From positions 14,446,001 to 14,510,000 of the forward strand of contig CM106586.1 in the NCBI GenBank assembly GCA_048013815.1: a DNA stretch of 64,000 bases, read 5' to 3'. Numbering within the stretch: the stretch's first letter is position 1; each line of letters begins with the position of its first letter. The notes below the pieces were generated by a model, which worked only from the letters and a program-made list of their open reading frames with translations, did no database searches and was not told the origin of the DNA. Below are positions 23,095 to 57,617 of the stretch, piece after piece. Both the position numbers and the translations under genes were made by a program. Source of the stretch: Setoptus koraiensis. Taxonomy: Eukaryota; Animalia; Arthropoda.

Positions 23095-24273
23095 TTAGTG
23101 TGGATGGACTTTTTCGACTATAATACACCAGGACGTATCTGGTTTAGAGTAGTATGTCTCTAGGATGGCCAAGCATCTCACTTGACTTATGAACTCCTCT
23201 AATTTTTGTTTTGTATGGTAATAATCGCTAACGCTACTCTCATCTTGATCATTACCACTCTGCTGGTATCTATCCAGTATATTTTGTTGGCCCGACCTAG
23301 TATTCTTCTTATTACCAGTCATCTTATCTTTTTTAATTCGATTGTTTTCATCGCTTTCTTCGTTTCGATTTAGCTTTTCATATGCACCACAATGGTGGTT
23401 ACGATGTGAGTCATCCTGCCCGCGAACATCCGACACTTGAGCCTCATTATTTTCCATGTCCAGAGGCTCTGATCTGAGTTCATCATCCTGTTCTGCGTTC
23501 TCATCATCACTTGTGTTTGTGTTTGTAGTTAAATTCAGATCTATGTCGGCCTCCATCTCTAGAGCCAATTCCAGGTCTAGATCATCTCTTTCTTCGTCCT
23601 CATCTGCAATAGCCATGGTATCTGAGAAGAGAATTAAGTCTGAGCTCAATCTATTATTTGTTGGCCTGTACGATGATGACGGTGCCATAGACATGAGTGG
23701 TTTGGGTGAGAATATTGGCTTGCTGCTGCTGTTATTGTTATCTTGTTGCACAAACAATTCAGATTTTGATTGTTTCGTGGCACCAGTTATTGCGGTATTT
23801 TTCAAAATATTGCCGTTATTATCGCCTATGGGACTGTTTGTTGGTGATTTTGTCTCATTGTTGTCAAAACCCATTCGTGCTGTTGGAGATAGTGGCGAGC
23901 ACGGAGTTGTCAACAGACTCCTTGGTGGCGAGAGACAATCGAGTTCGTTGAGTTCATTCAAATCAAATGAATTGTTACTAGCTAACGGCCTTGAATGTTT
24001 ACGTTGTTGTTGCCCACTTGAGTTGGCTCCTAGCGGAATTTGTTGTTGTTGCTGTTGATTTGCACTTGTTGTAGTTACAGTGGCACCCTGAAATATATTT
24101 GTATCGCCCGGTCTGGCAGGTATAACGGTAATCAAAGACTCAGACGAATCGATACTGTAAGTGTGGTGATGCGACGATGACGAATGCGACGACGAATGGT
24201 GTCGCCGAGGGCAATCCAGTAGGGGGGCTGCGGAGAAACGCCTGGGGGGCGGCATGACCGGATTGGGTACTTC
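23095..24273 (-). CDS. Low-complexity acidic/Ser-rich coding exon of unknown function; probable terminal exon of the giant gene, or a stand-alone 386-aa gene from ATG 24255
   Basis: 386-aa ORF with poly-Q/poly-N/acidic tracts like the other genes here. A pyrimidine-rich acceptor CCCCTTTTTAG|GAA lies 18 nt upstream of the ATG, in frame (phase 0). Confidence 0.6.
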   Translation of the reverse strand, partial: EVPNPVMPPPRRFSAAPLLDCPRRHHSSSHSSSSHHHTYSIDSSESLITVIPARPGDTNIFQGATVTTTSANQQQQQQIPLGANSSGQQQRKHSRPLASNNSFDLNELNELDCLSPPRSLLTTPCSPLSPTARMGFDNNETKSPTNSPIGDNNGNILKNTAITGATKQSKSELFVQQDNNNSSSKPIFSPKPLMSMAPSSSYRPTNNRLSSDLILFSDTMAIADEDEERDDLDLELALEMEADIDLNLTTNTNTSDDENAEQDDELRSEPLDMENNEAQVSDVRGQDDSHRNHHCGAYEKLNRNEESDENNRIKKDKMTGNKKNTRSGQQNILDRYQQSGNDQDESSVSDYYHTKQKLEEFISQVRCLAILETYYSKPDTSWCIIVEKVHPH

Positions 24274-27103: not shown

Positions 27104-27153
27104 CAGCTAAATGGAAGGGAGCCGGCCAGCTAAATGGAAGGGAGCCGGCCAGC
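27104..27153 (+). repeat. 23-bp direct tandem repeat x2
   Basis: CAGCTAAATGGAAGGGAGCCGGC occurs twice in tandem. Confidence 0.9.
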
Positions 27154-27571
27154 GCCGCCGGTCAGACGGTTCAGTGCGAATTCGCATCGCCAGATTGCTA
27201 CACCGGCGAGCTGACTCGGCCTGCGAGGAAAGCTGCCACACCGGAAGTGAGGCCCGATCGAGGCCGCGAACAGTGGGCGTGTGTGCTGGCGGGAGCTTTG
27301 CTTGCTTGGCCAGACGAGGCGAGGAGATTGCGTTGGCGGCCAGGGGCGCTCGGATGTAAGTATGGCGGCCAACATGTCGCCAGATTGACAATGACACACA
27401 CACACACACACACACTGTGATATATGCTGGCCCACACAGGCGCGGCCAACATTGTGAACGTTGGTGGCGTTGCATTTATATTAGGATATCAGATAATTTG
27501 CATAATGCAACTTATCTGAACTGATATATATCTGTTATATACGGCCATTGTTGGCCTGTTGGCCAGCCTCG

Positions 27572-27680
27572 GTCGGCCGGCTCAGTTGGTCAGTCGGCCG
27601 GCTCAGTTGGTCAGTCCGCTGGCCTCAGTTGGCCAGTCGGCCGGCTCAGTTGGTCAGTCCGCTGGCCTCAGTTGGCCAGT
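27572..27680 (+). repeat. Compound minisatellite built from GTCGGCCGGCTCAGTTGGTCA / CCGCTGGCCTCAGTTGGCCA units
   Basis: About five CTCAGTTGG[T/C]CAGT cores in alternating contexts. Confidence 0.85.
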
Positions 27681-28353
27681 GGGGCCCGTCTTGTTTGCAG
27701 TCACTCGACTCGGCGCTTGCCTATGTAATATACACAAGCTCCACACAATCAATTGGTGATATTATTATGACACACAATGACACCAATTTGCAGTCCAATC
27801 ATGCGCTCGCTCTCATCATATACAACGCTGTTGTTTGCCTAGGTGAGCTGGCCAGTGGGCCAGTGGGCCAGCGGGCCCACTTTGGCCACTTGCCTGCCGC
27901 CTGTTGGCAGAATGAATGCATGGCTTGATCAATTGGGGCCTCTTTTGGCCAATTTCAATTTGAGACAATCGGCCCGATTCGTGTCAGTCATGGATTGCGT
28001 GGCGCGTCACACACAGACAATATCGGCCCACTTGATACTTTTGAAACAAGTCGCAACGCACAGTGTGAGCACGCAACGAGGCTCGCCAATGCGCTTGACA
28101 AAATGCCCGCTCTAAAGGCTCAAAGGATTATTGCATTGCGCCAGTATTGCGTGCCCGAGGCGGCTCACGCCTCAAAATGATCGCTGGATTAACTGTAACA
28201 TTTGTTTGCACAAAATCAATAACAACAACCGCCATACATCACGTTCCACGCCAACCGCCATGCCATGCACCAGCGCACCATACACCAGCGTGCCATATAT
28301 CACATTCAATATATTGAATGGAAAATATGTAAATATGTCCCGGCGATACTTGC

Positions 28354-28479
28354 CTCGTGATGGGGCCTCGCGATGGGGCCTCGCGACGGGGCCTCGCGAT
28401 GGGGGATGCCAAGCGATGAGACTCACACTGCATCCCCTGCCACGGGGCTCCGTCGCGAGGCTCCGTCGCGAGCCACGAG
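28354..28479. repeat. Fold-back (inverted) array of a 13-bp unit
   Basis: The left arm is (GA[T/C]GGGGCCTCGC)x3-GATGGGGGATGC. The right arm is GCATCCCC..(GGCTCCGTCGCGA)x2..CACGAG, complementary to the left arm, with a ~20-nt loop. Confidence 0.8.
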
Positions 28480-31180
28480 CTGTCGTGATCATGCAACAAT
28501 CATCTGTTTGCGCCCGCTGACAGTCGCTGGCGCTGCCGCCACGGGATAAATGGAGCAAGCACAGCGGGCCAATATTTGGCTAGGCCAAACAGGCCCGCAA
28601 ACAGGCTAATGGGCACAGCGAGCCGCGGCCGGTCAGCGGCGCACTCATTAGTGGCAGCTTGAGTGGCCCGATTAAATTCATACGATTCCGATGCTGGCCG
28701 GCCATCGGGCACGACAACACGCTTCAGTGGCCGGCCATCCGCCCACTGGCGACGGCGCCCCCATTGGGCCCGGCGCACTCAGGTGGGCCCACTGACGCCC
28801 CTCGGTCTGTCGCCCGCGCCGTGGGGCCCCCTGATTTCTGGTTTTGGGGCCAGCTCGTGCCATTTGCTCGGGCCCCTAGCGAGCCCTAGCCGAGCTAGCT
28901 GTCTTGCTGCTCACAGACAACAGATGCCCGTGGAAGCTCGAGGCACAACGGCGCCAATTTCGGCAGTCTCGGCTCGGCGAGCCTCACCATTCTGGAACCG
29001 GCCCGGGTCCGTCAGCGGGCCCGCTCGTTCCACACGTTTGCAAGCATGCGTGACTGTGCCATTATCGCTGGATCCATCCATTCAATACACCCGACACACA
29101 CACACACACGACACATTATCGGCCGCGCGATTCCCGATATCGTGGCGCAAGTTCCACTTATTATTTCTTGTTCCGGCCGTCGCGGTCATTGGCGCCCCTC
29201 GGTCTCGGCCCGGTTGCATATTTCTCTGCTCCAGCAAGATGCTCTATCGTGGCTATCACAAGAGTGTGGACATTGCCAGGCTGCGGACGTCGCCAGGGTG
29301 CGGACAGCGCCAGAGTGCGGACGTCTCCAGAGATCCCTGCGGGCCCGCATCGCCAAGACTGGCGACCCAGTTCGGGCTGGCTCGATATCCGCCAATATCC
29401 GTTGCTAACAACTCACGAGTTGTTGTCAGCGGCGTTGCTGAGAATATGGGAATTTTATTTTCATTATCATGCGAACAACGGCCGAGCGATTGGGCGACGA
29501 TCGGGCCGGCGGCCGCATCTCGTTGCATATGTCGGCGGCGGCGGCGATCGCCGAGCGGCACCGCAACCTTGAACCGCTGCCCGAACATGCAGCCGGCCGG
29601 GCGCTAGCGGCCGTGCCAAGGGCAGCGGGGGAAGGTGGGGGGGGGCGAAATTTTAATTTAAATCCCTTTCTATTATTATTATTTGATTCTTAAGTTCTAA
29701 CGACTGCATCGCTAGTGCATCGCTAACGGTGCTGCTAACGGTGCTGTTGTTGTCGCCTATTATAATATTATATAACGGTGTTAATATTATAATATTATAT
29801 TATGCAACGCGCTCGCTTTAATCGATGGATACTTGAGCAAGTGGAGCATTGTGCGTGCAATTGGGGCCGGCACGAGAGCGGGCGAACGAGCGAGCGAGCG
29901 ACAAGTTATAAACTTGTAAGCCCCCCATTATTGCTATTTCTATTACTGTTGGTATTATTGCTATCTGTTCTCTGTTGTGTGTTCGCTTCGCTCTCGCTTC
30001 GCTTCTTTTTCTTTGGGTGCAAAAAATCACTTGAAATTATATTATATTAGCATCTTATTCGATTTCGTTCTTGCCCGTCGTTTCGGCCCATTATAATGCC
30101 AGAACCAAGCGACCGTCTGATGGCATGACAATGCTATTTCACTCCATTACTGGAGGACTCTCCGTGGTGTAGACAGAGACTTTCTATCAGAGAGCATCCA
30201 CCGCAAAGAGATGGGGGCGCCAAGAGCAAGGAGTGCTCGTCAATTGATTTCGGCGGGTTCGCCGATGCCCGCCGAAGCCAAAACTCGACGCCATTGCGTC
30301 ACCCGTTGTGGTACACTGTTTGCGTCACACATTAGCTGTCGCTGCATTTATGTCATTGCCACATCATCTCACCTCAAACTACTTACTACTCGCCAGTGGT
30401 GCGCGGGGCCCATATGGGCCCCGCGCATATTGCCCGCTTCTTTTCGCCAATTCTTTTCGCGACACGCTCCAGTGTGTGTGTGTGTGCCGTCGAGCTCGCC
30501 AGTATCCGGCGTGTTCGACGGCCTTTTAGACAATGCCAGGCAGTGCGGTAGACAATGGCAGAGAAAGAAAAAAATTGCATGCGATAATTTAAGACGAATT
30601 AATAAAACGACGAGTGAACCCATCGAGCGCCCAGCTTCGAGCGTCGCCGCCGACGACCAATTTTAAATGGGCCCGGCCTGCGCCAAATTGGTTCCCATTG
30701 TGGGCCCAGCGCCAGCACACAACCGAAGGGCAGATGTCGCCTGGCGCTGGCTGGGCCCCTGAAGGCTCCCAGTGGCCGAGGCGCCTGCTAGATGGCGCTG
30801 GCGCCGGTTCAGGCAGCCAGCCAGCCAGCGTCAGATTGTTATTAGCGGCAACGTTGTTGCTGGCGTAGCCATGTGATTGTCGGCGTTGCCATTTTTTTCT
30901 TTAAATTAAACGCCAGATAACATATCGCATAAACAAACAGTGAACGCCAGAGCGACCAGATAAATGGTCGGCCAGCCCAACCAGATCACAACGATCGATA
31001 CGGGCCGGCCGGACAGCTGTAACTAGCACGCAGCCAGCCGGCCCGCCAGTCGGATTTGGCGCGCAGCTAAACACTCAAATTAGTTGCGGCCGGATAAATG
31101 TGTAAGCCAAATGTTATGGCCAGCGTTACGTAATCTAGCTATTATCAGCGCATTACTATCGGGGCGCTACTACTACTTAC

Positions 31181-31396
31181 CGGTGCATAGTTGGCCGAAA
31201 ATGAGCGCTGACGCTGCAACTTGGGCGCCAAATTCCTCTGTATTTGCCACTTGTTTTTGCGACTCTTGCCAATGGCTCCCCCGCTTGGTGCTTGGCCGCT
31301 GCTGGCACCAGTTGGTGGCTGCGTGCCACCGCCAGCGGCTCCACCTGTCACTGTTGTATCGCTGTTGTCGTTGTTGCTGTTGCTGTTGTTGTTTGT

Positions 31397-31428
<32 letters not shown>

Positions 31429-31770
31429 GCTGTTGCATCAGTTGTTGTTGCTGTTGTTTATTTGCGGCCGTGGACGCGGCTTTGGAGAATGCGTTCGCTT
31501 GTAGCTGCTGATGATATTGTTGATGATGTTGCTGTTGCTGCTGAAAAGTTTGATGATGACGCTTAATGCCGCCCGCTGTCGATGAACCAGAACTAGAATT
31601 TGACATTCTCCGGCTAACGCTGCCAACATATGCCGCCGATGAGCTGGCTCGCGGCCGGCCCGCCGTTGGCTTCTTGAAGTTGGCCGGCCCGTGGGTTTGT
31701 TTGCTGGCTGCATGATGGTGCCGGTGATGACGTTTATTGGGCCCGCCGAGGGGCGCCTCGCTAGCGCTGC
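31181..31770 (-). CDS. Internal coding exon (590 nt), His/Gln/Asn/Gly-rich; predicted exon following the giant exon
   Basis: Acceptor CAACCAATAG|GC (phase 1) at 31770. The frame is open through GSASEAPLGGPNKRHHRHHH..SRRMSNSS..poly-Q..KLQRQRSFSANYAP, and ends at a canonical donor CCG|GTAAGT (phase 0) at 31181. Confidence 0.7.
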
Positions 31771-31988
31771 CTATTGGTTGTTGGAAATACAGCCCATGGA
31801 GAGAGATGTGACATTTTTAGCAGTGCGTTATGTTGCGTAGTGGCGGTGGTGCCATAATGGTTGCAACGAGAGCAAAAGGTAATATAATAAAAGCTTTGTA
31901 AGATGAGTGAGCGTTCAAAATAATCTCGATCTGCGATGCAAGATTAGGGCGGATTACCGCGCCGGGATCTAGCCGCTAGTGCAGCCAC

Positions 31989-32037
31989 ACAGTATGCGGC
32001 CCGCCGACAGTGTGCGGCCCGCCGACAGTGTGCGGCC
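31989..32037 (+). repeat. 18-bp tandem repeat x~3
   Basis: ACAGT[A/G]TGCGGCCCGCCG repeated; lies in the intron between the giant exon and the 31.2-31.8 kb exon. Confidence 0.85.
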
Positions 32038-32789
32038 GGATCGGGGTAGCCGGCGGCTGCTGGTGGCCGACGGGTCTGGGTGGCCGGCAAATCGGGATAG
32101 ATGGCAAATTGGATTGGAGGATTGCGGCGAGATTACACGCGTGACTACATGCGAGACGAGCAAGCGACTGTGCGCTGCGCCAGCCCAACAATGGATATCC
32201 CCGTGCAATCTGGATGGATAAATGATGGATAAAAATGATTCCTCTTTCAGGGGCACGCCGAGCAATGTGTGGGCATGTTCGTGGATACCCCGCGGATCCA
32301 CCAACTCTAGAGTTATCACGCCAGTTGTGTGAGCCCTCACAACATTGTCAGTAATCATCTGGCTGCAATACGCGGCGGATATCCTACGAGCGCCCAATTT
32401 GGGCCCTGTTATCGGGTCGCGTTTTGAGCAAATTGCAAATCGGTTTCAACGCCTCGGGCGATCTCAGCCTGTTTGGTTGTCATCAAACAGCTGATACGGG
32501 CAAACAAATCAGAGATCAGCTCCGAAAGCAACCATCGTTTGCTGACAACCAGAGGGCCTCTATACATTCATGAACGGTTTTCACGCACGCCATTCACGCG
32601 TGGATACCCACGCGTCCATGTAAATTATCCGATCGCTCGCAGCCACTCCAGAGTGTGGAGTCCAGACCGTCGGTATTCAGCGGCCGGCGCGTCTCGTCTT
32701 GGCCGACAACGGATGAATCAGGCAAACGGGAGAATGGGACAAACGGGCGACGGGCTACGGAAGGGGCGCCCTGTCTGACAGGAGCGCCA

Positions 32790-33008
32790 TCAATCAAGTG
32801 TAAGCTTACCTGGCGGTGTCGGGTGTTGGCGGTGATCGAACGACGACGCTTGTTGGCCGAGATAATTGGCTCGCCCGTCGATATTGTCGTCGTCGTCGTC
32901 GTCGTCGTTGTCGTGATTTACGTTTGAACAGTTTTGGTGGGGTGCCACAGTTTCTGCAGCACCGTTGTCGTCGATGTTGTCATCAGTGTCGGAGCAGCCG
33001 GACGACGT

Positions 33009-33041
<33 letters not shown>

Positions 33042-36000
33042 TGTTTGCAGCGGCGACAAGCCCAATTTGTGCGCCTCACCTTGTTTGTGGTGGCCCTGTT
33101 GTTTGTGTTTTTTGCTGGTGGCCCCGTTTGGATTGTTTGTGTGCCACTGGCGAAACTTTTCCGCATCCTCGAGCGACACCGTTGAACCCGACGACCAGTC
33201 GGAGACATCATCGTCGTCATCTTGCTCGTCGTCGTCGTCTTGGTCGGGCTCGGGGTCGTGGTCTAGTTCGCGGTCGCGGTCGGCCGGCCCGGCGCACAAG
33301 TCGCGGTCGTTTTCGCGCCGCTGTGTCATAATTGTTGTCTTATTTAAATTTGAACTGTCGTCATGGTTGTCGTCGTCGTCGTCCATGTTGAGCTCGTCAT
33401 TTTCGTCGATTATCAGACTCCTGGCTATGCCCGGAAACACTGCCCTGTCGGCCGCTTGTTGTCGCTGGCGCTGCAGTTGCTGCTGCTGTTGCTGCTGGTG
33501 AGACAGGCTGGGGGGCCCCGGCGGCTCGTCGCATCCGGGCGACGAGTCGTGCGAGGTCGATGACCAAGACGAGTCAGAGGTGGATGACGTGCTAGACGAC
33601 GACGACGACGACGACGAGGCCATCGATGACGACGTGCTGAAACTTATATCGAGACACGAGAGGCGCCTGTCGCGGTTCAACGAGTTAACTGGCTCTCGAT
33701 GATCCAAATCTAACTTAAGATCTAGATCGTCGTCTAAATCGTCTGCTAGTTGATGTTGCTGCTGTTGCGCAACACAAGCCAGCGTCTCTTCCGGCAATCT
33801 CTCCAGCTCGGGCCCCAACAGGCTCGTTGTCGTCGTCGTGGGCTGACTGACGGGCACGAACGTCGATGCGGGCGCTATTTGCGAGCACGATTCACCTGAA
33901 TTCAACGACGATGACAGCGCCAATGATTTCGGGCTACTTGTTTGGGCAAAATTTGAGCCGGCGAGCTGCTGACACTTTTGCTCGCCACTGTGTGTCGGCG
34001 CCATGTCGCTGTCAGCGGCGTCAGTTATGGCCGATTTGATGGCCGCTTGCAGTTGAGCGCGCTGTTTCCGGTTCGCGCAAGCTGCGCCGGCCCCCGCGTC
34101 GAAATTGTCGCTTGTTCGGTCGTTGGTTCGGTCGTCGCGGGCCCAACAGCCGGCACGGTCGTCCGCTGCCGCTGCCGGGCACGAGGTATATTTATTGTCG
34201 TGGGCAGCGCAGCAGCAATCATAGTTGTCGCGTGACAGTGGGCCCGTCGCGGGCGCCTCAACCTCTTTTTTCTTGGTGCTGCTGCTGCTGCCAGCCGTAT
34301 CGGGACGACACGACTTAGTTATAATCTCATCATTTGACGACACAAAATTGTTATGCTGACTGAAACGTCTGGGCGCCGCTGCCGATATTTCGCTAGAGGG
34401 CGTATAGTGCGCGGCGATATTGGATATTGGGCAGCCGGATCGGCTGTCAGGGGCGCTGCAGTCGGCTAATTCAATTTGTTTTTCAATCTGCTGCTCTTTC
34501 GTCCGCAACACGCCGGCGACAACAACAACACCTTGCTGTTGTTGATTACATGCACTTGTCATGGATCGGCTGGTGCCACTGCCAATTGGCGCCACAGTGT
34601 CGACGGTGTCACCAGCAGACACTGGCTGCTTGCCCGATCGGCCGAGGCCCGCCGACAGGGGGCGCGCCATCATGAGATATTGCTGCTGTTGTTGTTGTTG
34701 TTGTTGTTGTTGCTGCTGTTGTTGGTTGTGTAACACTTGATTGACGCACAATTTGCCCTCGATCATGGCGTCCAATTGACCGGCGAAACTTCGCGCGTTC
34801 TCCAGGCTCATGTTGGTGTCAATAAAGGACGAGCGTCTGTACGGATTATGCAATATTTTTGCTGTTGTCGGCGCTGTTGTTGCTGTTGCTGCTGTTGTTG
34901 TTGCTGTTGCATGCAGCGTTTGATTGACAGCCGAATGTTTGGCCGATTTTGTCGGGCTGTCATGTCTCGACGATTGGCCGACAGCCGCGCAACCTGGCGC
35001 CCCCGTTATTGCAGCCGCCGCCGCCGCCGACAATCTAATCTCTGTTTGATGGGGGGCCCCCGTTCTGGTTGCGGCCGGCGCGGACGGGTCCGGCGATGCC
35101 GACTGTCGCCTATTGTTGGGCCGCGTGCCGTCACAGTGATCGACTGCATTATTGCCGCCGCCGCCGCCGGACAGCGGCTCGTTGGACAGCAGCGGATTAG
35201 ACGGGTTCGACGAGGACGACGACGACGCCGCCGACCAGTTGTCCGCGCAATGGATAATGTTTGCGGCCGGCGGGTCCGCGGCGGCGCACCGCCCGGGCGC
35301 ACACAACACGTCGGTAATGTCCGCCAAATCGCTAATATCCGCAATGTGGGCGCCCGTGGTCAGACCGAAGCGGCTCTTCAATAAATCGACATCAATTATT
35401 TGGTTATTGCTGCTGTTACTGGTGGCGCCACTGTGCTGCTGCTGGCAGCCTGTCGGCGGCGCTGATTTGCGGCAATCAAACTTTGCGGCGCTGTTGGCGG
35501 GGGCGCCATTGCGTGATTCAATTGCCACTAATTGCCTGGTGGCCAATTCCTGAAACTGCTGCTGCTGCTGGTGCCGCTTGTTTGTTGCTGTCTGGTTGTT
35601 GCGTTGCTGATTCACGACCAGGTGAGCATCGGCACAGTTATTGCTGTCCGTCGATTGTGTTGCTTGCTGCGCCCCATCGTGGGAACTCTGGCGATGAGTT
35701 GAGCCGGCCCCGCTGGCCGCGGACAACAAATTGATTGAGTTAGAGTTGGCCAGGGCCGCCGCCTGGAACGAGGAACGGCGCCGGTATTGTTGTCGCAAGC
35801 GCGTCAGTTGCTCCTCTACGTCCACTTGCTCAACGCCGCTCACCGGGAAACAGGAAGATTGCATATTAATGTTATTAACTTCCGCCGGCGGGGCCGCGCT
35901 GGGCGCCGCAACCGCGCTTATAGAAGACAATAATGTGGACGGTATCGAGCCACTTGTGTTGCGTCTGGCCTGCGACTGGTAATTGGCCGACTGGCGCTGC

Positions 36001-39000
36001 TGCTGCGGCTGTTGCTGCTGTTGGTGCGCCACAGAGGTGGCGAGACCGCTACTTCCGGTCAGAATGGACTTTACCGGAGCGGCGGCCGCGGTGGCTGGGC
36101 CGGCCCGTTGCGACGCTGGTGTGGGCAAACAAAACGGCGCGGACGACAACAATAGCGGCTGATGCGGGTGCAGTACGGTGCTGGCTGATTGTCGCCTCTG
36201 TTTGTTTGGGCTGTAACCCGTCACCTGAGCGCTGCTGCTTGATTGGTCCGTCAGGTGGCGATGCTGCGCCCCCTGATACTGATACTGGTAATGATGCGTA
36301 TACGACTGCTGCTGCTGATGGTGATCCAGCGATTGACTTTGGATAGAGGCCAGCAGGGGCAACATTGATATCACTTTTGAGGCGGGAGTTGGCGGCTTTT
36401 TCATGCTGTTGGCCACAAATACCTCGTCGTCGCGCTGATACAAATTGATACAGTGAGCCATAGAGCTGTATCCGCTTGATTGATTTGAGTTAGCACTGGC
36501 CAGCATTGCCTTGGACGACATTGTTGACTTAGTGCCCTGGTGAGCAAGCATTGAGTTAGCGCTGGTTTGCTGGTGCTGGTGCTGCTGCCGACCGGAAGTC
36601 GCTACTGCCAAACTCTCAACGTGCTCGGCGGCCAACGATTGCAGCCTTTTCATTAGCAATGCCGAGGTGTTTTTGCTTATTGCCACTGTTGACATTGGCG
36701 GCAACGCGGGCACCGATTGTTTGTGTTTACATGGTGGCTGCTGTTCATTCAGATAAGCACTCTGACAGTGGCCACTTTCGACAATGCAATCATTATCATT
36801 TGGCGCCCCCGTTTTATGGCCAGTGCGCAAGTGGCGACCCTTGCCCGATTGCGCCAGCGTCACATCGGCAGCTTCATTAATATTAATCAATTGCGGCCCG
36901 CTATTAATGCAACTTCCGCTTGCCGCCGCGGCGTCACCGCTGCTTGCGCCCACGCTGCCCGAGCCGGCGATACCTGTGCGGGCGCCGGCAGCCAATTGCT
37001 GGGTGCTCGCCAGGTAGCTGAGCTCATTGTTTGGCGTGCGCGCCATCAGCTGATTGAACAGCGACGGATCCTCGCAATCTATGCTGTTCACCTGGCTGCC
37101 CTTCATGCTTGGCTTGGGGCCCCGCTTGTCGCCGCTTGTGTGCGGGCCGGCCGCCGGGCAGCTTGATCCGGCCGAGCTTGATTCAACGGAGTTTGATCCG
37201 GCCGAGTTTGATGGCGCGCCGGTCGACGAGTCCGGCTGCGAGCCCCGATTTTCGGCCTCGCTGCTGCTGACGGGCCCCACGATGCCGGCCCCACTGTCCA
37301 CTTTACACTGGTCGCACAAATCTTCGCTGTCGCCCCCTTTTCTGGGCGCCTTGTTCCACGAATCGGGTGGCTCGATTCCGTTCCACTGCTTCGAAAACGA
37401 GTCAATTGTCGGGCCGCTCCTCGCCGACGAGCGGCGCTCGCTCGCCGGCCTGCCGCTCCGTTCGCCTTGTTGCTGACTGCTGCCCGTCTTGCCGGCGCCC
37501 CCGGATTTTTGCTTGCCAGCCTTGCTGCCACTGGGCGCCGGCTCGCGCTGCTTCTGCTGCCTTGCCAAATCGATCAATAGGGCCGATTCGCTGCAGTTTG
37601 TCAGCTCGCGCAGGCTCTTTTCGCCCATTGAGCTGCTCAGGTCGTCTTCGTCTCTGTAGTTGTAATTGTTCAACACGGCGGCCAATTCGCGCCCATTCGC
37701 AGCTTGAATTGCCGCCAGGGCCCCGCCGCTATCTGGCGAATATCTCACGGGCGAGTCGCTGCAATCGCCTGTGCGATCCGATCTGATCGATATCTCGGCT
37801 GAGCTCGCCATCAGATTATTATTATTATTTTCTGACTCTTGACTTGAAGTGGCCCGGTCGGGCACTCGGCAACTATTTGCGACAGTTTCATTTAGCGCCA
37901 CTTGATTGGCGGCGTCCGGCGCGCCCGGCCGCTTGTCGTCGGGCGTCGGGCTGGTTGCGTTCGCGCCCTCATCGCTTTCGTCGGGCCGGCTGGCGGCCGC
38001 CCTTGTCTGCGGCTCGTCTGGCGCCGGTGCTGCTGCTGTCGCCTCGCGGCAACCCAGCCACTCGGACAGCTGATCAACGGCGAATCTCTCAGCCGGGCCC
38101 TTTGAGGCCCCCCCGTTCGACAGCGGTTCGCTGTTGCTGCTGCCAAAGCACGCCCGCATGGAGGAGTTGTCGTCGTCGCAGCAGTCGGCGGCGGCGGCGG
38201 ATAAATCCGAGCCCAGTCTGTTCGCTTGCACGAGCTGCGAGCTTGCCAAACAATTGGAGCAACTGTCCGTGGCCGCTTGACACTTGTTTGAGCGCCTGTC
38301 CGCGCTCGAGGTGGCGCTGCTGACGGCGTTGTTAGTCGCATGCAGCTTGTCCGCTGGCTGCTGCTCATCGGGCTGGCGCTCGTTGAAGCGTGATCCGCTG
38401 CACCCGTCACTATGCGCATTGTTGCTGCCCGCGGCTGCCGCCGCCGCATCCATCTCCTGTCTAGGTGGCGCCCGAACGCCAACCCGAACAATGTCGCCCC
38501 CGTCGCCATTGCCGTTGTCGTGTTTCGTTGCATCTTTTGGCCGCTTCGCTTCTCTCGCCGCCTGTCCGCCGCCGCTCGACGATTTGTCGCGAGACGCTCG
38601 CCTCGCACAATTGTCCGGCCCGGCCGACAAACTGCTGCTGCTGGCCTCCTCCAGCGACATCTGCTGAATGGTGGTCAGGTGGCGCAGCTGTGCCGACGAC
38701 AACACCGAGGCCCGGCCCGTGACCTGGGCCGGGCCGCTGCTAGCGCCGTTCACGGCCGCCGTCGGCCCGTTCGCGCGTTCGGTCTCGTCGTCCTCTTGAC
38801 AGCAGCCCGCGCTGGACGGTGGCGCATACGAGGCGGCCCGTTGCCGCGATCGGCCCAAGTCGCAGCCCAACGTGGCACCCGCACAGTCGCCCGCCGTTGG
38901 CTGCTCCCGGCACGCAGGCCCCAAATTTGTTTGGCTGGCACCGAAAACGGGCGACGGTCGCCAAAAGTTTGCCGCCAAACTCTGCCGTTTCTTGTGGTTG

Positions 39001-42000
39001 GCGCCCTGACGTGCGTTGCCGTTCTTGTGCCCGTAGCCAGCATGATCCAGATTGGCCAGATAAAGGTGGCCCGTGAGCCCGATCTTGAAGCCGGTGGGCG
39101 TGCAGCTCCTCTGAGCGGTTATCTCGGCCGCATTGACCGACAGACGGCGCCCAATGGCGCTGTCCACCACCTTGATGAAATTGTCGTTTTGTGCCAGCGA
39201 ATTCATCGATTTCAAAAATTGATCGTCGTTTATGAAGGTGACCGGATGCAAATCGGTTATCTTCAGCTTGTTGCGATTGCGGCCCGCCAAGCGCAAATTG
39301 AGCGTTGTGGCTGCGGGCGCCACGTCCAACTGACGCTGGCCGCGCTGCTGCTGCTGGCCCGACGGACGCCGCTCGCCGCCCGAAGTGGCGCTCGGGCGTA
39401 AATTGTTGTTGGCGGCATAATTGTTGTTGTCAGCGCTCTTTGTTTGTCCGGCAACAAAGTCCGGTGCGACACCAGAGGGCGACCGGTTGTTTTCGGTGCC
39501 CTTGTTGCCGGTCGCTGTTGTCGTCGGGCCGGAATAACTCACCGCCTTGCTGGCGCTGTACGGAAGGGGCGACACGGCCGGATCGAGTTGGAGCTCGCCA
39601 AAGTTTAGACTCGATCTGTCCGGATCGATCAATTCGCTGGTGTGACTCGCAGAGAGCCGGCTGTTGCTTCTGCTGTTGTTCAGTGTGGTGATACTCGACG
39701 ACAATGCCGATGCGGGCCGGCCCGCATCCGTGACGGGCATATCGTCGGTGGGCGTGATTCCGCTTGTACGTCCGCTTGTTCCGCTGACGGGCGGTACAGT
39801 TGGCGACGGCGACAAACCGGCGTACACCTCGTTGGCCAACGACGACGCGTCCAGCTCGCTGCTACCCGTTTCGCTGGGCGCGCACGCCAGCATGCTGTTG
39901 CGCGAGGCCGGCCTAGAGCTGGGCGCCGACGACAGCTTCTGCGGCGCCGGGCCGGCCGGAGGTAGCCCGAGCAGCCTGGAGCCGGTGCCGGGCACTGGCA
40001 CGGGCTGGGCCGACAGATTGGACAGATGCTCATTGTTGGACGATCTTGTTGTTTCGCCAGAGGCCGGCTGATTGTTGTACTGGTTGATTATTTGTGTCGA
40101 TTGAACCATTTGGTACGGCGCAAAAAACGACGCCGCATCCATGGGCATTGCGCCGTAATAGTCGGGTATGATTGAGCCGGCCCGTTGGGCGCGCGGGGCC
40201 GCCCGGGCCCACTGGTCGGCCCAATTGTGGGAGGCGTCGAGGGCCATGTTGTCGTTGATGATGCACTCCTCTAGAGTGTGCAATTCGGGCATTGAGAACC
40301 AACAGGAGCGCAGGGAACGGGCCGACGACGACGACTCGATGCTCTGCTGGCGCGAATAGGACGAATTTGAGGTTGTTGTGGAAGACGAGTTCGGGTTGCC
40401 CGACGGATGGTGCCCGTCGGGATTGTTTGCGGTCATGGGGTGGGGATAGTAACCGGTGCGGTGCTCGCCCGGCTGGCCGCCATGCGACGATATCTGTTGC
40501 TGCGGCGCCGGCGGATATTGCTGCTGCTGCGAATGGAGGTGCCGGCTTGCCGCCGCCGTCACGGGCTGCTGTTGCTGTTGGCCCGGCCCGAAGCCTGTCA
40601 GCTGATGACTCGGGCCCAGATTCAGAAGCTCGCCGCGAGGGGCGCCCGTGTCTTTGTAGGCCAGTGCCAGCTTGTACACTTGATTCACCTGTTCGTCCAA
40701 TTGTTGCTGGTAAGAGGGCCGGCGGGACGAAATGATGCGCTCGTAGGCGAGCTCTATCGAGTCTTGGGCCATCAGCAAATTGCTTCCGTCGCCGCTGCTG
40801 CAACTACAACTGCAACTGCTTTGCTGATCCGCTTGTCCGCTCGCCGCCGCCGTCTGCTTGCCGCCCTCCTTATTTGTCTGCTGCTGTTTAGCCGCCTGGC
40901 GGCGCTTCCATTTGTCGTCTTCGCCACCACTTCCGGTTGCGGTCCCGTTGTAGCTGTTGGCTGCCGGGCTGCCTTTGCCGTCTGTCTGCATTGAGTGTGA
41001 CAAGAATAGGCAGGGCTCTGCGCTGTGACACAAGCGCATTCTGTCTGAGCTAGACGCCATCAGCTGATTGTCATTGCAGCTGTCATCGTCAGCTGTTTGC
41101 GGTCTAGGCAGCGGACTGGCGCTGTTGTTGTTGATGTCATGTTGCATGGTGTCGTTGTCGTTGCTGTTGTTGCTCGCAGTGTTGATTATGTTGTTATTGG
41201 CTACGTCACAGTTGTGGCTGCTTGTGACATGTACACCATTTTGTCGGTCACTGTTGGTGCTGTTGTTGTTGGCGTTGTTGTTGCTGTTGCTGCTGTCGTT
41301 GTTGTTGACGTTGGACAGATCACTCACTGACGAGCGCACGTTGTTGGCCGGGTGGCTGGTTGAAGACGTTGAATTCGGCGGCGTTGTCTTGCTGTTTTCG
41401 GTTGTTGATGTTGTTGTGGTCTCGTTATCGCTTGCGATGGTGGGCGGCAGGGCGCTCGAAGCTCGGGCATCTTTCACGGTCAACATTGTGATGGTGGCGG
41501 CCGAGGTTGATGCGGAAGCGGACACCGACGCGGACGATGGCGGCCGGGTAGGCGACGCCATCGACAGGCACGACGTGTGATGCGATTGTTGGCTGGTGGC
41601 CGCCTGATTGCCGCTTGTCGGGCCGGACATGAGCGAATTTGTTGCGCCGGCGCTAGTGCTGGCGCCTAGCGACGACAACGTGCTGAAACGATCGCGGATT
41701 TTCGCAAAGAAACGCGACGAAGAATTCTTCGACAGGGGCGATATGGGCGACCGTGGCGTGTTGCACGTTATCATGTTGCTACTGCTCACGCTACCCAAGC
41801 TGCCCATACTGCTGACACTGCCCAGCGAAAACTGATTTGGGGCGCTCATCCCGCCGGCCGGCCCGGCGGCGACCGACGAACCGGAAGTTGCCGTCAAATG
41901 CCGCTGTCTGGGCGACAGTTGACAACTGTTAATGGGCGACGAGGCGGAGATATGTTGATTGTTTGTTGGCGCCGAGTCGTTGGCGTGATTGTCAGTGCTG

Positions 42001-45000
42001 AGTGTTGCATGACTGTCGGGATTATAGGTTAATAGCTGCGAGCTGCCAATATCCATCGAAGACTGACAGCTCGGGCTGCACCGGGTCGGAGTGGGCACGG
42101 GGGTGGGCGTTGGAGTGGGCGTGGTGCTGGAGGACAGCATGAAGGCGTTGAAGGCGGCATTGCTGGTTGACCGGAAGAAGCTTCTGAGCGGCGACGGAGA
42201 CGGCGACAATTGCGCCCTCTGTTGCTGTTGCTGCTGCTGTTGTTGCTGTTCGACGCTTGTTTGGCGAGTGAAAAATCCGGTTCGCGGAGACGAGGGTGTC
42301 GGCGGTGGCGCCGACTGGGCGGCAGGTGGCGCTGCCAGGCGGGCCCCAAATTGTTGTTGCTGCTGCTGTTGCTGCTGCTGCTGCAACGACAATATTGTTT
42401 GCAGTGGCTTGTTTATGCTGGACAGGGTGGTCTTGAGTTGGTCGCGAATGGCGCTAGTGACCCGATTGAAATCGTTGGCCGCCCTGCTGGACGAGAACGA
42501 GTTTTTGCGCTCCAGATTTGCGCCGCTCTTGGACTCATTAATTTGCGCAGCCGGCGCCGGCTGCCTCACGGGCGATTTTGTGGGGGCGCCCTTGTCGCCG
42601 GCGAGCAGTTGTGCAGTCTTAAAATAATGGTCACCTTGTTCATTGTAGTTGATCGAGTGGCGCTGGTCGTTGTCGACATCCGATCCGTGTAATGAGGCCC
42701 CCGGTGGGTGGCGCGGCGCTCGCTGTTCGGGGCCGCTGTTGTAAAATTGGGTCGGCGCCCGGCTGTCGGGGGCCAAATGTTGCGCTAGATGCGCGTCCAT
42801 TGGCGCTATGCGACCGTGCTGGAATTGGAGCGAGCCCAAACTGTAACTGCGGCCCTCAATTAGACCGGCGGTGTTATTTTCATCATTAGCGGCCGGGACG
42901 GTTTTAATCGCATGGTGCTGCTGCTGAACTGTCACTTGCCTGTGCTGGACCGCGCCGACGGGAATCCGCTTTCTTGATGTCGGTGCGGCCGCGTAGTCGC
43001 ATGCGTCCGCACCGTGCGGCTTGCCGGCGCCGGCGGCGCCCGTGTCGACAAGTTGCGACCACTTGACCGACGACTGATAATTGCCGCCGCCGCCGTGCTG
43101 CTGCTGCTGTTGCGCCCGGCTGTTGTTTGCCTGCTGAATGCTCTGCAGGAAGCCGCTCAGCTCGATGGAGCCCACCGAGCCGCCGCCCGCCTTCTGATGG
43201 GCCCGGTGATGCGGCTGCTGATTGGCGCCGGGCTGCGTGCCGTTGTCAAGGAGACAGCAGCCCGCCAGGGATGAGGGCGCCGTGTAGATCTGGTCGACGG
43301 AGCCGCTCATTAGATACTGATCTAGAGTCATTAGGTCGTCGCTGGACGTGTTGGCCGTGTGACTGCCGCCCGCAGCGCCGCCGCCGCCGCTCGCACCGGC
43401 CGCCCCAGTGGCCGGCCCGAGGTGATGCGCCAATCCGCAGCCGTGCTCGGTCATGTGTTGCATCATTTGCATAGGGTCTTGGCGGTGATTTTTGCTGTTG
43501 TTCTGATTGTTTCTGTTGTTGTTGTTGTTGTTGTTGTGCTGATGATGATGATGATGGTGCTGATGATGATGGTGGTGGTGCGGATGCGCCGGGTCCCGGC
43601 CGTGCTGGCCCAAATGCAACAAGGCCGCCAGGCGCAGCTCTTCCTCGTAGGCGACGCTGCTCGAGCTCGGGCACGTCGTCTCGTCCTCCAGACTCGCCTG
43701 GCTCGACCGGGCCGCACTTGATGCATGCACCGCGCCCGGCCGTGAATAGCCCGCGGGAGCGGTCTGGTTGCCGGGTCCGGTCCCGGTACCGCCGGCGTTG
43801 CTACCCGACGACTGGTAATAACTGTGACCAGTGTTGTTGGTCGGCTGATGCTGCTGCTGATGATGATGATACTGCTGATAATGTTGCTGCGAAGTCACAA
43901 TGTTGTGCATGTTACCCGCACCGCATTCCGCCAACCCGACCGGATGTGGATGCGAGTGACGGGCCACGCTGGCGCCCGCTAGCACCGCTCCGTCCGTGTA
44001 ATTAATGAACGATTCACTCAATTCCGCTATGCTACCCACGGCGTGCCCAATGAGACCGCTTGCGCCCGCTCCCACGGGCGTGCTGCTGCCCCCGAGCGAA
44101 TGTGAGGCCTGCAGCGGGTAGTGTTGCTGACCGATTGCCGGCTGCCCGTTACCGGTGCCACTTCCGCCGCTATTCGATCCGGTGGTGGCATGCGAGTGGC
44201 TGCACGTGCTGGCGCCGCCTCCCCCGCCGTAAGAGATGGGCGTTGCAACGCCGTAACTCGAATCCTGTTGGTAGATGCTCGATATGCCCGACAGGGTCGA
44301 CGTACGCCTACTGCTGTCCTGTCCGGTTACGCACGTCGGCCCGCTACTTGTGTCACTGGCGACGCTCGAACTGAACGTGTTCGATTGGCGCCACCCGGGG
44401 CCGGGTATTTGCGGATTGCTGGCACTGCTGGCCGCGGCCATGGTTGTGGGACATTGGGCACTGTTGTTGGCGGCGGCATGCAACGGCTGCTGTTGCAGTT
44501 GCTGATGCTGAGCAAAATGTTGGTGATGGTGCTGCTGCTGCTGGCCGGCCGCACCGCCGCCGCCCGTTGCGTACACCGTGCCCGGGGGCGTGTCGCTTCG
44601 GGTAGCGGGCTGGTAAGGTTGCTGATTGGTGGGCTGGATGAGGCTGGTGCAAGAGGCCGACGACGATCGGTTTCGGCGCACGATCTGAATGGGCGGCGAT
44701 TGTGTTGGCTTTGCATTTGTTGCTGGCTGTTGTTGCTGTTGTTGCTGTTGATGCTGTTGTTGTTGCTGTTGTGGTTGTTGTTGTTGCTGTTGTGGTTGTT
44801 GTTGCTGATTGTTGTCCGACAGCGCTGGTTGTTTGTGGTCGTGGTCGCTGTTGAGCCTGTCGATGGTGTCACCGTCGACATTGTTGCCGGCGCCGGGCCG
44901 CGCTGGGGGCGCCAGCGGATTGGGGGAGCCCTCGTAGAGCGTGTTGAGTGTTCTCATTGTTGTTGCGGTTGTTGTTGTTATGTTTCTGGACTGGTTTAAA

Positions 45001-45084
45001 CTGGCGTCTTGTTGTTCGCTCGCTGTTGTTGTTGTTGTCGCCTGCTCTTGTTTGGCTGCCTGGCCGCCGTTGGACAATCGCTGC

Positions 45085-45131
<47 letters not shown>

Positions 45132-47606
45132 CTGCTGATGGGTGTTCGTGCACGAGTGTCGGCCATTGTTGGCGCCCCTGTCGCGCCGATCGTAATGGTC
45201 GCCTTGCGTCGCCTCGGCAGCGGCCGCGGCCGGGGAGCCAGTTCGCTTGACGTTGTTGTTGTTGTTGTCGCCGGTTGCAGTTTCCACGGGCGTGCAGCTC
45301 GCGCGCGCCTGCTCGAGCTGTTGCGCAACACAATCGAAGCTTCCGAAACTGGCCGCCTGGCGCTTGTTGTTGCCGATGGTGAAATTTGCATAATCTATCG
45401 ACGATTGGTTTGTGTTTGTTGTGGGCGCCGTCCAGCCCGAGGTGGTGTCGTCCGTGAGGTAGTAGCTGTCGTCGTCTTCGTCGTCTTGCTCGCCCCCTTG
45501 CTGCAGCTCGTCCGCTTCGTCTTGCTCCTCCGCGACGGGCTCCTCAATGGGCATGTCGTCGTCCTCGTACGGCACCTCAATGGATCGGGTAAAGAACGCC
45601 TGCACCGCAATAGATTGGCGATGTTTCATTGCGTAATCGCTGGACAAAAACGTTCCGTCGGGACGGGAATGAGGCTGTTGTTGTTGTTGTTGCTGTGCCA
45701 TTTGGTGCTGCTGGTGCTGCTGCTCGCCGCTGCTGGCCTCCACAATCAGCTCTGGCCCGTGCGGCTCATTGTGTCGGCCCGGGCCGGACTGGGCTGCGGC
45801 CGGGTTGGCCGCTTGCTGGGCCCATTGGCTGCTCCGCCGGCGACCCGGCGCACCGACGTCGCCGCTGTCCGCTTGCGTGCTCGTGAGCGCCTGCTCCAGG
45901 GCAGCCGCAATGGGCACCAGCACCACACTTGAGGTGCTCGCAAACAAACTATTGGCCAGATATTTCATTTCCGCCAAGCTCAAGCCGCCAAGTCCCGGCT
46001 GCTGCTGCTGTTGTTGTTGTTGTTCGCCGCTGTTGCATCTCGCTGCTGCTGCTGTCGCCTCTATGAACTCTTTATCACTAGTGCCGGTATTCACTATGTC
46101 ACCGCCGAGCTCGGCGGTGTTTATGCGCTGCGCCCGTACAAATTGCGTCACGCTCGTGCCGGTGGTGGTGCTGCTGGTCACAGTTGTTGTGATGGTTGTA
46201 ACGCTGCAGGTAGTTACCGTTATGGCGGCGCCAACAGTTTCATTGTTGTCGACTTGCATAACCGAACAATCATTGTTGTTGCCCGTTGCGGCGCTCGGGT
46301 ATCCATTGTTGTTGTTGGCGTTGTTGGGGCCGCCGCCGCCACCGCTCGCTTGCTGCATGGAGCTCAGGAACCTGTTCAGCAGGTTATTGCCGCCCGCCGA
46401 CAGGCGGCGCGTGAGTTTCTTGGCCGCGTACTGCAGCGCCACGGTGTTGTTTATCACAGTGTTTGTGGCGCCTCCATTAATTGGCTCATCACAAGTGCTA
46501 GTGGCTGTTGTTGTTGCGGCCGGTTGCGGGCCGTTGCGCAACGTTGGCGTCGTGTTTGTTCGCGATTGTCGCTGTTGCTGTTGTTGTTGCTGTTGTTGGC
46601 GCTGTTGTTGGTGTTGGCGCTGTTGTTGGCACTGTCGTTGGTCGCGTTGTGTCGCAACGCGGTGTGTCGGCGCGCCAGGTATTGTGGTGGCCCTATTCAG
46701 CAGCGTCGTAATGCCTCGGAAATTGTGCTCGCTATCAATGGCGATACTGCGCTTCTCTATGCGCTGCTCTATACGCTCTATTTGCTCTACTTTGTGGGGC
46801 CCAAATTGCCGTTGCGGGCCGGCGCCGCTGCCGCCGCCGCCGATCGTCGTGGGCCGCTGAGTGCGCTCTTGTGCGCCGGCCAATCTTATCTCTTTATCTC
46901 TTGTCGTTATTATAATATCGGCGCTGCTTGCAACTGCAGCAGCGCCGGTCGCTTGCAGTGGCAGTTGTTGCGCCCTTGTCGGGCCCCGTTGTCGGCCCGA
47001 CTCACTTGACACCGCCGCCGCCGCCGCCGCTATATCAGGCACGACGGACGGCTGGTGCGGCCGGGCACGACGCGACACGCCGTTTTGGCAATCGGGCCCC
47101 GTCGGCCCGTTTGCCGCTGCCGCCGCTGTTGTTGTCGGTGGTGCTTCCTGTTGTTGGTCGCAGTCGGCCGGTTTGCTGGCACGGGCCGGCGCGGCTGGCG
47201 CGCTTGTTGGCCCCGCTGACCTCTGACACATCTGAACAGGTGAGCCACCGTTATTATCATTGTTGTTGCTGTTGTTGTTGTTGTCGTTATGCTGATTATG
47301 ATGGCGGCCGTTATTGCCGCTGTTATCATCATTATTATTACTAGTGCCATTGCCATTGTTGTTGTTGCTGTTGCAATTTTGATCTCGAGTTGTTGCCCTT
47401 GTTTCCATTGGGGCGCCGGTCGCGCCTCGCAGGCGCCAAATGGGCGTATCGCGGGTCGAGCCCGAGCCGGCGGTGGCGCGGCCCCGCTGGTCGGTTGTTG
47501 CTGTAATATTACTATTATTATTGCTGCCATTACTGCTGTTATTAGAATACGGCAAACTGGTGGCGCTCGTAATGGTGCTGCAAGGCATGATACAATTGCT
47601 GTCGTT

Positions 47607-47697
<91 letters not shown>

Positions 47698-48479
47698 CTG
47701 CTGCTGCTGTTGTTGTTGTTGTTGTTGTCGCTGGTGCTGCTGTTGGACGGAACGGTCGCGCTGGGCACCAGCGCTACATTGGTGTGGCTGTCAGCGGCGG
47801 CGGCCGCATTACCCGACAGGTACTGCTGATGTTGGTCGGAAGCGGTGCATATCGGCATGGCGTTGTCGGTGACAACATTCTCTAGCTCGGCGTAGCTAAA
47901 CGTTGTTGGCGTGTTGTTTGTTGTGGTGGTTGTTGTTGCTGTATTATCTTCGTCGTCATCTGCGTCGTCGTCGTCGTCGTCGTCGTCGTCGACATCGCAC
48001 TCGTTGGCGTTGCTGTCGGGCGTTGGGGTAGGATTTGGGGTATTTGTTGTTGCGCTGGCCTTGCACTTGCCGTTGGGCTCCTCCGCGCCAGCTTTATCGC
48101 AATAGATGCTGCCCGACATAGAGGGCGCAGCAGTGGCTGCTGTTTGGCCACAGTCGGCAGTCGACAATTGCATCACCGGCGACCATGATTGTCTGAACTG
48201 CATATTGGCCCCATTATTATCATCGGCGGGCCTTTTCTTGCTGCTCGATGTCATCATGTTGTTGTTGGCACTCGCTTGAGTGGCGCCGCTCGTGGTCCCG
48301 TCGAGCTGGCACGGGCAGTTGCTGGGCCGCTGTTGCTGTTGCTGTTGTTGTTGCTGTTGCTGCTGCTGGCGGGCCCCGGCGAACAGTATTTGTCCGCCAG
48401 GCGTCGTTATTGTTTGCTCGCTGACGAAATGTCGCCCGTCCGATTGTTGATGCACCAACTGCTCGTCGCGACTCTGCTG
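32790..48479 (-). CDS. Giant stop-free reading frame / giant exon (~15.7 kb, >5,100 aa), intrinsically-disordered-type protein of unknown family
   Basis: The frame is open from 48479 (upstream TGA at 48482-48480) to the stop at 32790. The first ATG is at 48257; the track's start at 48458 is a TTG. Composition is Q/N/S/A/G/T/D-rich with homopolymer tracts. A strong donor CCAG|GTAAGC lies at 32810, 7 codons before the stop. An open frame this long cannot be chance. Confidence 0.9.
47611..47694 (-). repeat. Perfect hexanucleotide microsatellite (TCGTTG)x14 encoding (Asn-Asp)n in the giant ORF
   Basis: Uninterrupted TCGTTG run on the + strand, translated NDNDND... on the minus strand. Confidence 0.95.
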
Positions 48480-51420: not shown

Positions 51421-51461
51421 CGCCGGACCTCGGACGCCGGACCTCGGACGCCGGACCTCGG
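51421..51461 (+). repeat. 14-bp tandem repeat x3
   Basis: CGCCGGACCTCGGA repeated. Confidence 0.85.
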
Positions 51462-57400: not shown

Positions 57401-57475
57401 GCGCCCAAAAGAACCCATGATCAGAGGTTATTGTTTCTGTTCGTTTTCCGTTACTTTGGGGCCCGTTTCTGTCTC

Positions 57476-57617
57476 TGTTGTTGTCGTTGCTGCTGTCGTT
57501 GCTGTTGTTGTTGCTGCTGTTGTTGCTGCTGCTGCTGTTGTTGCTGCTGTTGTCGTTGCTGTTGTTGCTGTTGCTGTTGTCGTTGCTGTTGTTGCTGTTG
57601 TTGTTGCTGTTGTCGTT
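57476..57617 (+). repeat. Compound trinucleotide microsatellite (GTT/GCT/GTC)n
   Basis: About 140-bp run of GTT/GCT/GTC triplets (CAA/CAG-type on the minus strand). Confidence 0.95.

Follow-up and report, generated by a model that had tools for sequence, protein, structure and literature searches.

The window analysed here, a 64,000-nucleotide stretch of Setoptus koraiensis contig CM106586.1, carries on its minus strand an open reading frame (ORF) of 15.7 kb that is probably the principal one of three exons in a gene of ~5,738 codons. On this reading, the product is intracellular and almost wholly disordered, and it belongs to a family that has no name. The initial annotation, made from the DNA letters by themselves, had described the frame as a giant exon. 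Its coordinates were right and the open frame is real, but the coding exon probably stops at position 32810, short of the end of the frame, and is one of three.

The frame is free of stops from position 48479 to the stop codon at 32790-32792, a run of 5,229 codons in which the first ATG is found at 48257-48255. Mononucleotide shuffles predict 161 internal stops and codon-position-preserving shuffles 143; none is observed. Each of the remaining five frames of the same DNA has 93-186 stops, and the longest stretch left open among them spans 395 codons. T is scarce on the sense strand (14-15% at each codon position), low-complexity sequence is abundant there, and antisense frames reach 300-395 codons, so that the frame might be regarded as a non-functional by-product of a CAG/AAC-rich composition. 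This explanation is effectively refuted. The shuffles preserve composition and still predict stops by the hundred or more, homologous frames exist in at least four other species with islands at 37-93% identity, and the last exon shows a ratio of nonsynonymous to synonymous substitution (dN/dS) of 0.13. On the plus strand, the interval 44121-47009 within the giant exon holds antisense open frames of 292-363 codons. Most likely they are not genes but composition artefacts that mirror the CAG/CAA/AAC-rich sense strand.

The product of the giant ORF is dominated by S (13%), A (11.5%), Q (9.6%), N (7.4%), T (7.3%) and G (7.2%), includes 25 homopolymer runs at least six residues long, and has 16.5% order-promoting residues, in line with the very large, mostly disordered protein that had been proposed. 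The exon is non-repetitive, as annotated, since Tandem Repeats Finder detects codon-scale microsatellites only, with a longest period of 30 nt. No 19-residue window exceeds a hydropathy of 1.55, and the N-terminus is hydrophilic; hence there is neither a signal peptide nor a membrane span, and on this point too the initial annotation was correct. Pfam scans covered the giant exon, a 386-aa ORF comprising nearly all of the last exon, and the last exon within an alignment of its homologues (A2). In the giant exon, scanned in two halves, nothing significant was detected (a Gp23 match at E = 0.024 is noise), and a PDB sequence search with a 660-aa piece of its product returned no match. The claim that the protein lacks a folded domain thus holds for the giant exon. 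It does not quite hold for the entire gene, whose C-terminus is predicted to fold (see below).

The three-exon gene model

The donor CAG/GTAAGC lies 18 nt before the stop of the giant frame, in phase 1, and most likely it is here that the giant coding exon ends. Joining 48257-32810, 31770-31181 and 24273-23095 (Table 1) produces an uninterrupted coding sequence of 17,217 nt, with 5,738 codons. Intron 1 was placed because without it the giant exon would not lead in frame into the conserved motif RKNKW.IQRNLAPKL.RQRSFSANYAP. A phase-compatible acceptor is present, and other in-phase acceptors occur at 31708, 31648 and 31576. In its C-terminal part, the ORF at 31145-31606 (minus strand) carries RKNKWQIQRNLAPKLQRQRSFSANYAP, which matches the extreme C-terminal end of the relatives' giant ORFs in tblastn and blastp searches, with 80-93% identity in three relatives and 52% in P0001. 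Since the relatives carry the homologous motif inside the giant ORF itself, reading straight through, intron 1 appears to be lineage-specific.

Intron 2 is supported by conservation of its donor in three species and of its acceptor in four. In the window, L001 and L002, a GTAAGT donor in phase 0 follows directly on the motif RQRSFSANY[AT]P; the acceptor (AG/GA, before (EVPNPV)MPP.RRFSAAP) is conserved in these three and in L010. The equivalent gap is ~0.9-1.5 kb in the relatives, as against 6,907 nt in the window. Beyond it, homologues of the ORF at 23095-24255 (minus strand) are found just downstream of the giant ORF in the relatives. The residues EVPNPV are conserved 5' of the ATG of this ORF, directly after an AG, in the window, L002 and L010, which indicates that the last exon begins at the acceptor, at 24273, and not at the ATG.

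Table 1. Exons, introns and conserved segments of the gene, in window positions
Feature	Position	Strand	Residues	Remarks
Giant coding exon	32810..48257	-		First ATG to donor; frame open from 48479; start codon and 5' boundary provisional
Island 1	46365..46439	-	681-705	Contains LTRRLS; collinear BLAST anchors in at least 3 of 4 relatives
Island 2	45573..45647	-	945-969	AMKHRQSIAVQAFFTRSIEV; block HMM E = 8e-13
Island 3	44238..44330	-	1384-1414	SSRRTSTLSGISSIYQQ; E = 4e-14
Island 4	40653..40745	-	2579-2609	SRRPSYQQQLDEQVNQVYKLA; E = 1e-15
Island 5	40272..40349	-	2711-2736	ARSLRSCWFSMPELH; E = 2e-18
Largest conserved block	38958..39326	-	3052-3174	LRLAGRNRN..K.TDLHP.TFIND..FL.SM, GRRLSVNA, KIGLTG..Y, KRQSLAANFW
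Island 7	36351..36452	-	4010-4043	INLYQRDDEVFVANSMK; E = 7e-15
Island 8	35772..35834	-	4216-4236	VDVEEQLTRLRQQ; E = 6e-10
Intron 1	31771..32809	-		1,039 nt; GTAAGC...CAATAG; inferred
Middle exon	31181..31770	-		197 codons including split codon; ends in RNLAPKLQRQRSFSANYAP (31181-31237)
Intron 2	24274..31180	-		6,907 nt; GTAAGT...TTTTAG; phase 0
Last exon	23095..24273	-		392 codons plus stop
N-terminal island of last exon	24106-24273	-		Invariant PP.RRFSAAP...SIDSSES.ITV
C-terminal helix and beta-hairpin module	23098-23232	-		Predicted; pattern N..C..H..EELE.L..Q...L.I..CY......C...E

As judged from substitution rates, the last exon is under purifying selection. The rates were computed on this exon only, against the closest relative, L010, for which dN/dS is 0.13 at a synonymous divergence (dS) of 0.86. 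The N-terminal island, over 50 codons, has a ratio of 0 (dN = 0, dS 0.65), the middle of the exon 0.15 and the C-terminal module 0.11. The exon was aligned in A2 and A4, and the C-terminal module aligns in A4. With an alignment of 21 sequences, AlphaFold models the last ~45 residues as a 20-residue helix followed by a beta-hairpin, at a predicted local distance difference test (pLDDT) score of 83-93.

Some points weigh against the gene and its product as described here. Intron 1 and the start codon were both placed by inference alone. The sequencing runs at the locus, X1 and X2, consist of genomic DNA, because their depth is uniform over intron, intergenic DNA and exon, and none of the runs examined yields transcript support. 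Finally, in the window and in P0006 the C-terminal module has diverged further than anywhere else in the family, and two Cys residues that are otherwise nearly invariant are missing from it.

Reads of four runs (X1, X2, X5 and X6) were compared over positions 30900-36899 of the window. In X1 and X2, assigned to organisms A and B, 36553 G>A is the one substitution found in both across the 6 kb and 31051 the sole difference; the two organisms are probably the same species. Over the same interval, X5 and X6 reads match CAG-type repeats only, plus one 158-nt contig at a depth of 2.9. The read joints listed there are artefacts, every one of them having sides of at most 23 nt and lying at repeats. 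X5 and X6 bear different organism and study codes. They comprise 393,237 and 393,260 records, are equal in size and do not differ in any match: a single data set was deposited under both sets of codes.

Conserved islands and the extent of the family

Complete giant exons are present in four other assemblies, each as one uninterrupted ORF, of 2,635, 2,661, 2,889 and 2,982 codons. Pairwise BLAST between the window protein and each of these four relatives reveals 5-6 anchors per relative, all of them collinear. A global MAFFT alignment of the five sequences loses register in its C-terminal half and was replaced by chains of BLAST anchors and a profile for each block. Sixteen blocks were defined from the four relatives alone, and each was searched against the window protein as a small hidden Markov model (HMM). 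Twelve are kept, their order unchanged, and one more, GQLDAMIEG, is marginal. The family keeps at least 12-16 short blocks, of 10-35 aa with one of ~120 aa, in strict order, while the sequence between them varies. The identity of the islands to the relatives is 37-93%, that of the largest block 37-45% (alignments A1 and A3). Seven islands had been singled out as examples in the initial annotation. Four of them, FFTRSIEVPY, CWFSMPELHTLEECII, KLKITDLHPVTFINDDQFL and EEQLTRLRQQYRRRSSF, are family-conserved blocks, and a fifth is the marginal one just mentioned. For the largest block, AlphaFold provides no confident fold (pLDDT 44, predicted template modelling score 0.20, from five sequences only), which is in keeping with a mostly disordered product. 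Look-alikes in the ESM Atlas score at most 0.81 for the 125-aa block and at most 0.59 for P0015, both at chance level.

The gene is carried by P0001, P0004, P0005 and L007:243-9191, to which ~30 homologues of the last exon must be added (21 in a single-sequence search, 30 in a profile search). In the profile search, all 30 members are found at E <= 5e-31 and nothing falls between 5e-31 and 0.01; the empty gap indicates that the family is sharply bounded. Its usual form is a single exon of 2,600-3,000 codons followed by a last exon of ~300-450 codons. Pfam revealed nothing consistent in the relatives and the 21 last-exon homologues, a PDB sequence search with the A2 profile returned no match, and none of the sources searched holds a name or an annotation for any member. 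An exhaustive HMMER search with residues 2540-3739 (1,200 aa, several islands) against 1.84 billion representatives of ~15 billion proteins retrieved two clusters only, none outside the family. The block at 3052-3174 was the only region matched (E = 3e-31 and 9e-28). Further members were obtained from word-indexed searches and contig look-ups. The proposal of an undescribed family is therefore borne out insofar as the sources searched hold neither name nor annotation, and the islands match nothing outside the unnamed family in exhaustive HMMER, Pfam and PDB searches. The protein is not unique, with ~30 relatives in public assemblies.

It could be asked whether the gene is in reality a hyper-diverged orthologue of a pan-arthropod, possibly characterised, gene, of which only the islands and the C-terminal module survive, too short for the searches. 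Disordered proteins evolve fast, and orthology is easily lost to sequence searches. Foldseek detected no match to the C-terminal model in PDB or Swiss-Prot. Among AlphaFold-DB clusters there are only weak matches to three uncharacterised proteins, A0A132A7A0, A0A182PS82 and A0A7R9BHK6. These top three are short proteins with 11-28% identity and match probabilities of 0.82-0.92, and in one of them the match lies at the extreme C-terminus of a 361-aa protein, a layout that resembles that of the last exon. Their accession prefixes look like those of arthropods. Their E-values are only 0.04-0.08 and their template modelling scores below 0.4, and they are best treated as a lead to a wider distribution and not as a finding. 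The exhaustive HMMER search, whose query held several islands including the largest block, the sharp profile boundary and the lack of a Pfam match in 21 members likewise speak against a pan-arthropod orthologue, which we regard as rather unlikely. A family confined to a narrower clade fits these results better.

All ~30 members come from intron-poor genomes, presumably those of eriophyoid mites. In the published account of eriophyoid genomes, 84% of the genes of Aculops lycopersici are intronless (PMC7738191). That description fits the window, where each neighbouring gene is an uninterrupted ORF. It also fits the relatives, whose contigs encode PIGO/PIGG and Dis3L2 as single ORFs of ~740-890 codons, a sign that these genomes are similarly intron-poor. 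The initial annotation considered an exon of this size remarkable in a genome that otherwise looks streamlined. This part of it must be abandoned, since the neighbouring genes are also uninterrupted and the relatives carry the gene as single exons of 8-9 kb.

Some observations were made on the surroundings of the gene. Most relatives (L003, L005, L006, L008 and L009) have PIGO/PIGG and then Dis3L2 as downstream neighbours; the window and L010 have V-ATPase subunit D instead; hence the locus has been rearranged in the sub-lineage of these two. Next to PIGO, L006:6383-13553 (minus strand) is an uninterrupted ORF of more than 2,407 codons that runs off the locus and has no Pfam match on record. 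Giant single-exon genes without domains may be common in these genomes. In the window, an uninterrupted ORF of 541 codons without a Pfam match lies at 15659-17284 (plus strand), between a CUB-domain gene and a GCP gene.

Lineage-specific doubling of the giant exon

The gene of the window shares with its relatives the collinear islands, the donor and acceptor of the last intron and the N- and C-terminal motifs of the last exon. It differs from them in having a probable intron 1, in its homopolymer runs, which are almost absent from the relatives, and above all in length: the 5,229 codons of the giant frame compare with 2,635-2,982, and the exon is 1.8-2.0 times as long as theirs. The growth is not uniform. 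The spacer between islands 1 and 2 occupies ~235 aa in the window and 41-81 aa in the relatives, that between islands 3 and 4 ~1,165 aa and 392-496 aa, and that between islands 5 and 6 778-837 aa and 218-311 aa; the spacers between islands 2 and 3 and between islands 4 and 5 are unchanged. Anchor positions lead to an estimate of ~680 aa for the region N-terminal to island 1, compared with <100 aa in the relatives. When the five sequences are aligned, 2,349 residues of the window protein stand opposite gaps in all four relatives. Altogether ~1,830-2,350 codons were added in the window lineage, in a few spacers.

The added sequence has been kept as coding sequence, for the 18 inserts that measure 30 aa or more (1,827 codons) contain 0 stops in the reading frame, as against 53 and 86 in the other two sense frames. 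The same counts bear on the possibility that internal splicing (exitrons) removes much of the giant exon and leaves a far shorter mature protein. Three GT[AG]AGT strings that could serve such splicing are present on the sense strand, at 47005, 41327 and 39542. The open state of the inserts would be unexpected if they were always spliced out, and the relatives keep uninterrupted frames over their entire 2,635-2,982 codons. Extensive internal splicing is thus quite improbable.

Homopolymer runs hold only ~10% of the added residues. In the remainder, which is non-repetitive, S, A, N, Q, D and T are abundant. Of the window protein, 7.8% lies in runs of at least four identical residues, as compared with 1.3-2.9% of the relatives' proteins, and the longest Q run has 19 residues in the window (in mixed CAG/CAA codons) versus 3-5 in the relatives. 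The homopolymer tracts are a recent overlay specific to this lineage. The initial picture of motif islands strung on homopolymer spacers must be amended in this sense: the islands are conserved in fixed order, but the homopolymers are not part of the family's design. Trinucleotide slippage is a probable source of part of the added codons.

The giant exon has a GC content of ~0.59 in the window and of 0.47-0.58 in the relatives; at third codon positions (GC3) the values are 0.69 and 0.42-0.66, the window being marginally above L002. Neighbouring genes have a GC content of 0.37-0.45 and a GC3 of 0.36-0.49. A GC-rich block of ~30 kb extends over ~24000-54000, with GC contents of 0.49-0.64 as compared with 0.37-0.45 in the first 24 kb. 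It holds the giant exon, both introns and non-coding flanks with (CA)n/(GT)n microsatellites; the last exon (GC 0.44) lies just outside. The inclusion of non-coding DNA may point to a mutational bias of the region as a whole, in combination with repeat slippage. On the 5' side of the giant exon, at least 15.5 kb (48480-64000) contain no open frame longer than 217 codons, while the rest of the window is densely packed. In the relatives, the giant exon is preceded by 5-7.5 kb of ORF-free DNA. A few non-coding elements in this upstream DNA are conserved between L002 and L003, such as L002:1486-1604 and L003:3196-3314 (76% identity). In the comparison of the window with distant relatives, neither upstream coding exons nor conserved elements were found.

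Possible function and relation to known proteins

Many of the conserved blocks are centred on R-R-x-S or R-x-x-S: TRRLS, KHRQS, SRRTS, SRRPS, GRRLS, KRQS/RRPS-LAPNFW, RPRSAS, RQRSFS and PRRFS. Such sequences resemble the sites of basophilic kinases (such as PKA, AKT, CaMK and AMPK-related kinases), which are often read by 14-3-3 proteins. In each relative, Ser residues with Arg at -3 represent ~20% of the Ser inside conserved blocks and ~8% outside (Fisher p = 0.006-0.03). The conserved blocks would probably act as docking and phosphorylation motifs. Because the enrichment is a signature of basophilic-kinase substrates, which are often 14-3-3 clients, a multi-site phospho-regulated scaffold or adaptor is the function that we favour, tentatively; its C-terminal module would bind a partner or self-associate. 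What tells against this function is that the enrichment is ~2.5-fold, that the four tests are not independent, and that the motif is common in Ser/Arg-rich sequence.

IRS proteins, Par-3/Bazooka and AS160/TBC1D4 likewise consist of a long disordered chain with conserved R-x-x-S/R-R-x-S sites and poorly conserved linkers. These proteins have folded domains (PH/PTB, PDZ and Rab-GAP), which the window protein lacks, and its sites are predicted from sequence. Moreover, unlike those of 14-3-3 client scaffolds, most of its motifs have no Pro at +2.

A different function, that of a nuclear transcriptional co-regulator similar to the Q/A/H/N-rich regulators of insects with opa-type repeats, is conceivable in view of the polyQ, polyA, polyH and polyN tracts and of a basic KKRP stretch near the N-terminus; the ORF-free upstream DNA (15.5 kb or more in the window, 5-7.5 kb in the relatives) would fit complex regulation. 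Mastermind-type Opa/CAG-repeat regulators indeed resemble the window protein in mixing CAG/CAA-encoded polyQ with polyA, polyH and polyN in a very long disordered protein. However, Pfam detects no MamL-1 or other co-activator domain and no DNA-binding domain, and the tracts are absent from the relatives and so cannot define the function of the family. For these reasons we consider a nuclear co-regulator unlikely and retain the cytoplasmic signalling scaffold.

Other giant-exon proteins are less close. The insert exons of giant ankyrins, Futsch/MAP1B, AHNAK, Ki-67 and the PEVK region of titin also have exons of many kb that encode thousands of unstructured residues of low hydrophobicity. They are built of tandem repeat units or attached to folded domains (ANK, ZU5, PDZ, FHA, Ig), and neither was found here in the exons scanned with Pfam. 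Furthermore, the size of the exon in the window reflects genome-wide intron poverty and not a special architecture. More specifically, there are no ANK, ZU5, death or MAP1 regions in the Pfam scans of the giant and last exons, no repeats of the titin, AHNAK, obscurin or spectrin type by Pfam or by repeat period, and, by hydropathy and Tandem Repeats Finder, neither the signal peptide nor the tandem Pro/Thr/Ser repeat units of mucins and secreted proteins.

Taken as a whole, the gene may encode a clade-restricted, undescribed giant disordered hub, probably eriophyoid, with ~15-20 ordered linear motifs, many of them basophilic phosphosites, and a C-terminal module under strong purifying selection, joined by linkers that are free to double. 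We hold this overall interpretation with less than even confidence, and the practical importance of the gene is modest for now. For annotation, the giant ORF and the two small ORFs downstream of it would become one gene, which would fix a model that is likely to be mis-split. The unannotated family is now defined and could be given a profile. A streamlined genome, it appears, still allows local bloat: ~7 kb of extra coding sequence, an intron of 6.9 kb and an ORF-free flank of at least 15 kb, all within or beside the 30-kb GC-rich block. If the reading holds, the family would offer a comparative system in which selection on motifs and their order can be set against selection on spacing, the linkers varying three- to five-fold. 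The window protein, with ~5,740 residues in what may be one of the most streamlined genomes of any animal, would then serve as a natural experiment to show what linker length contributes in a scaffold made of a string of motifs.

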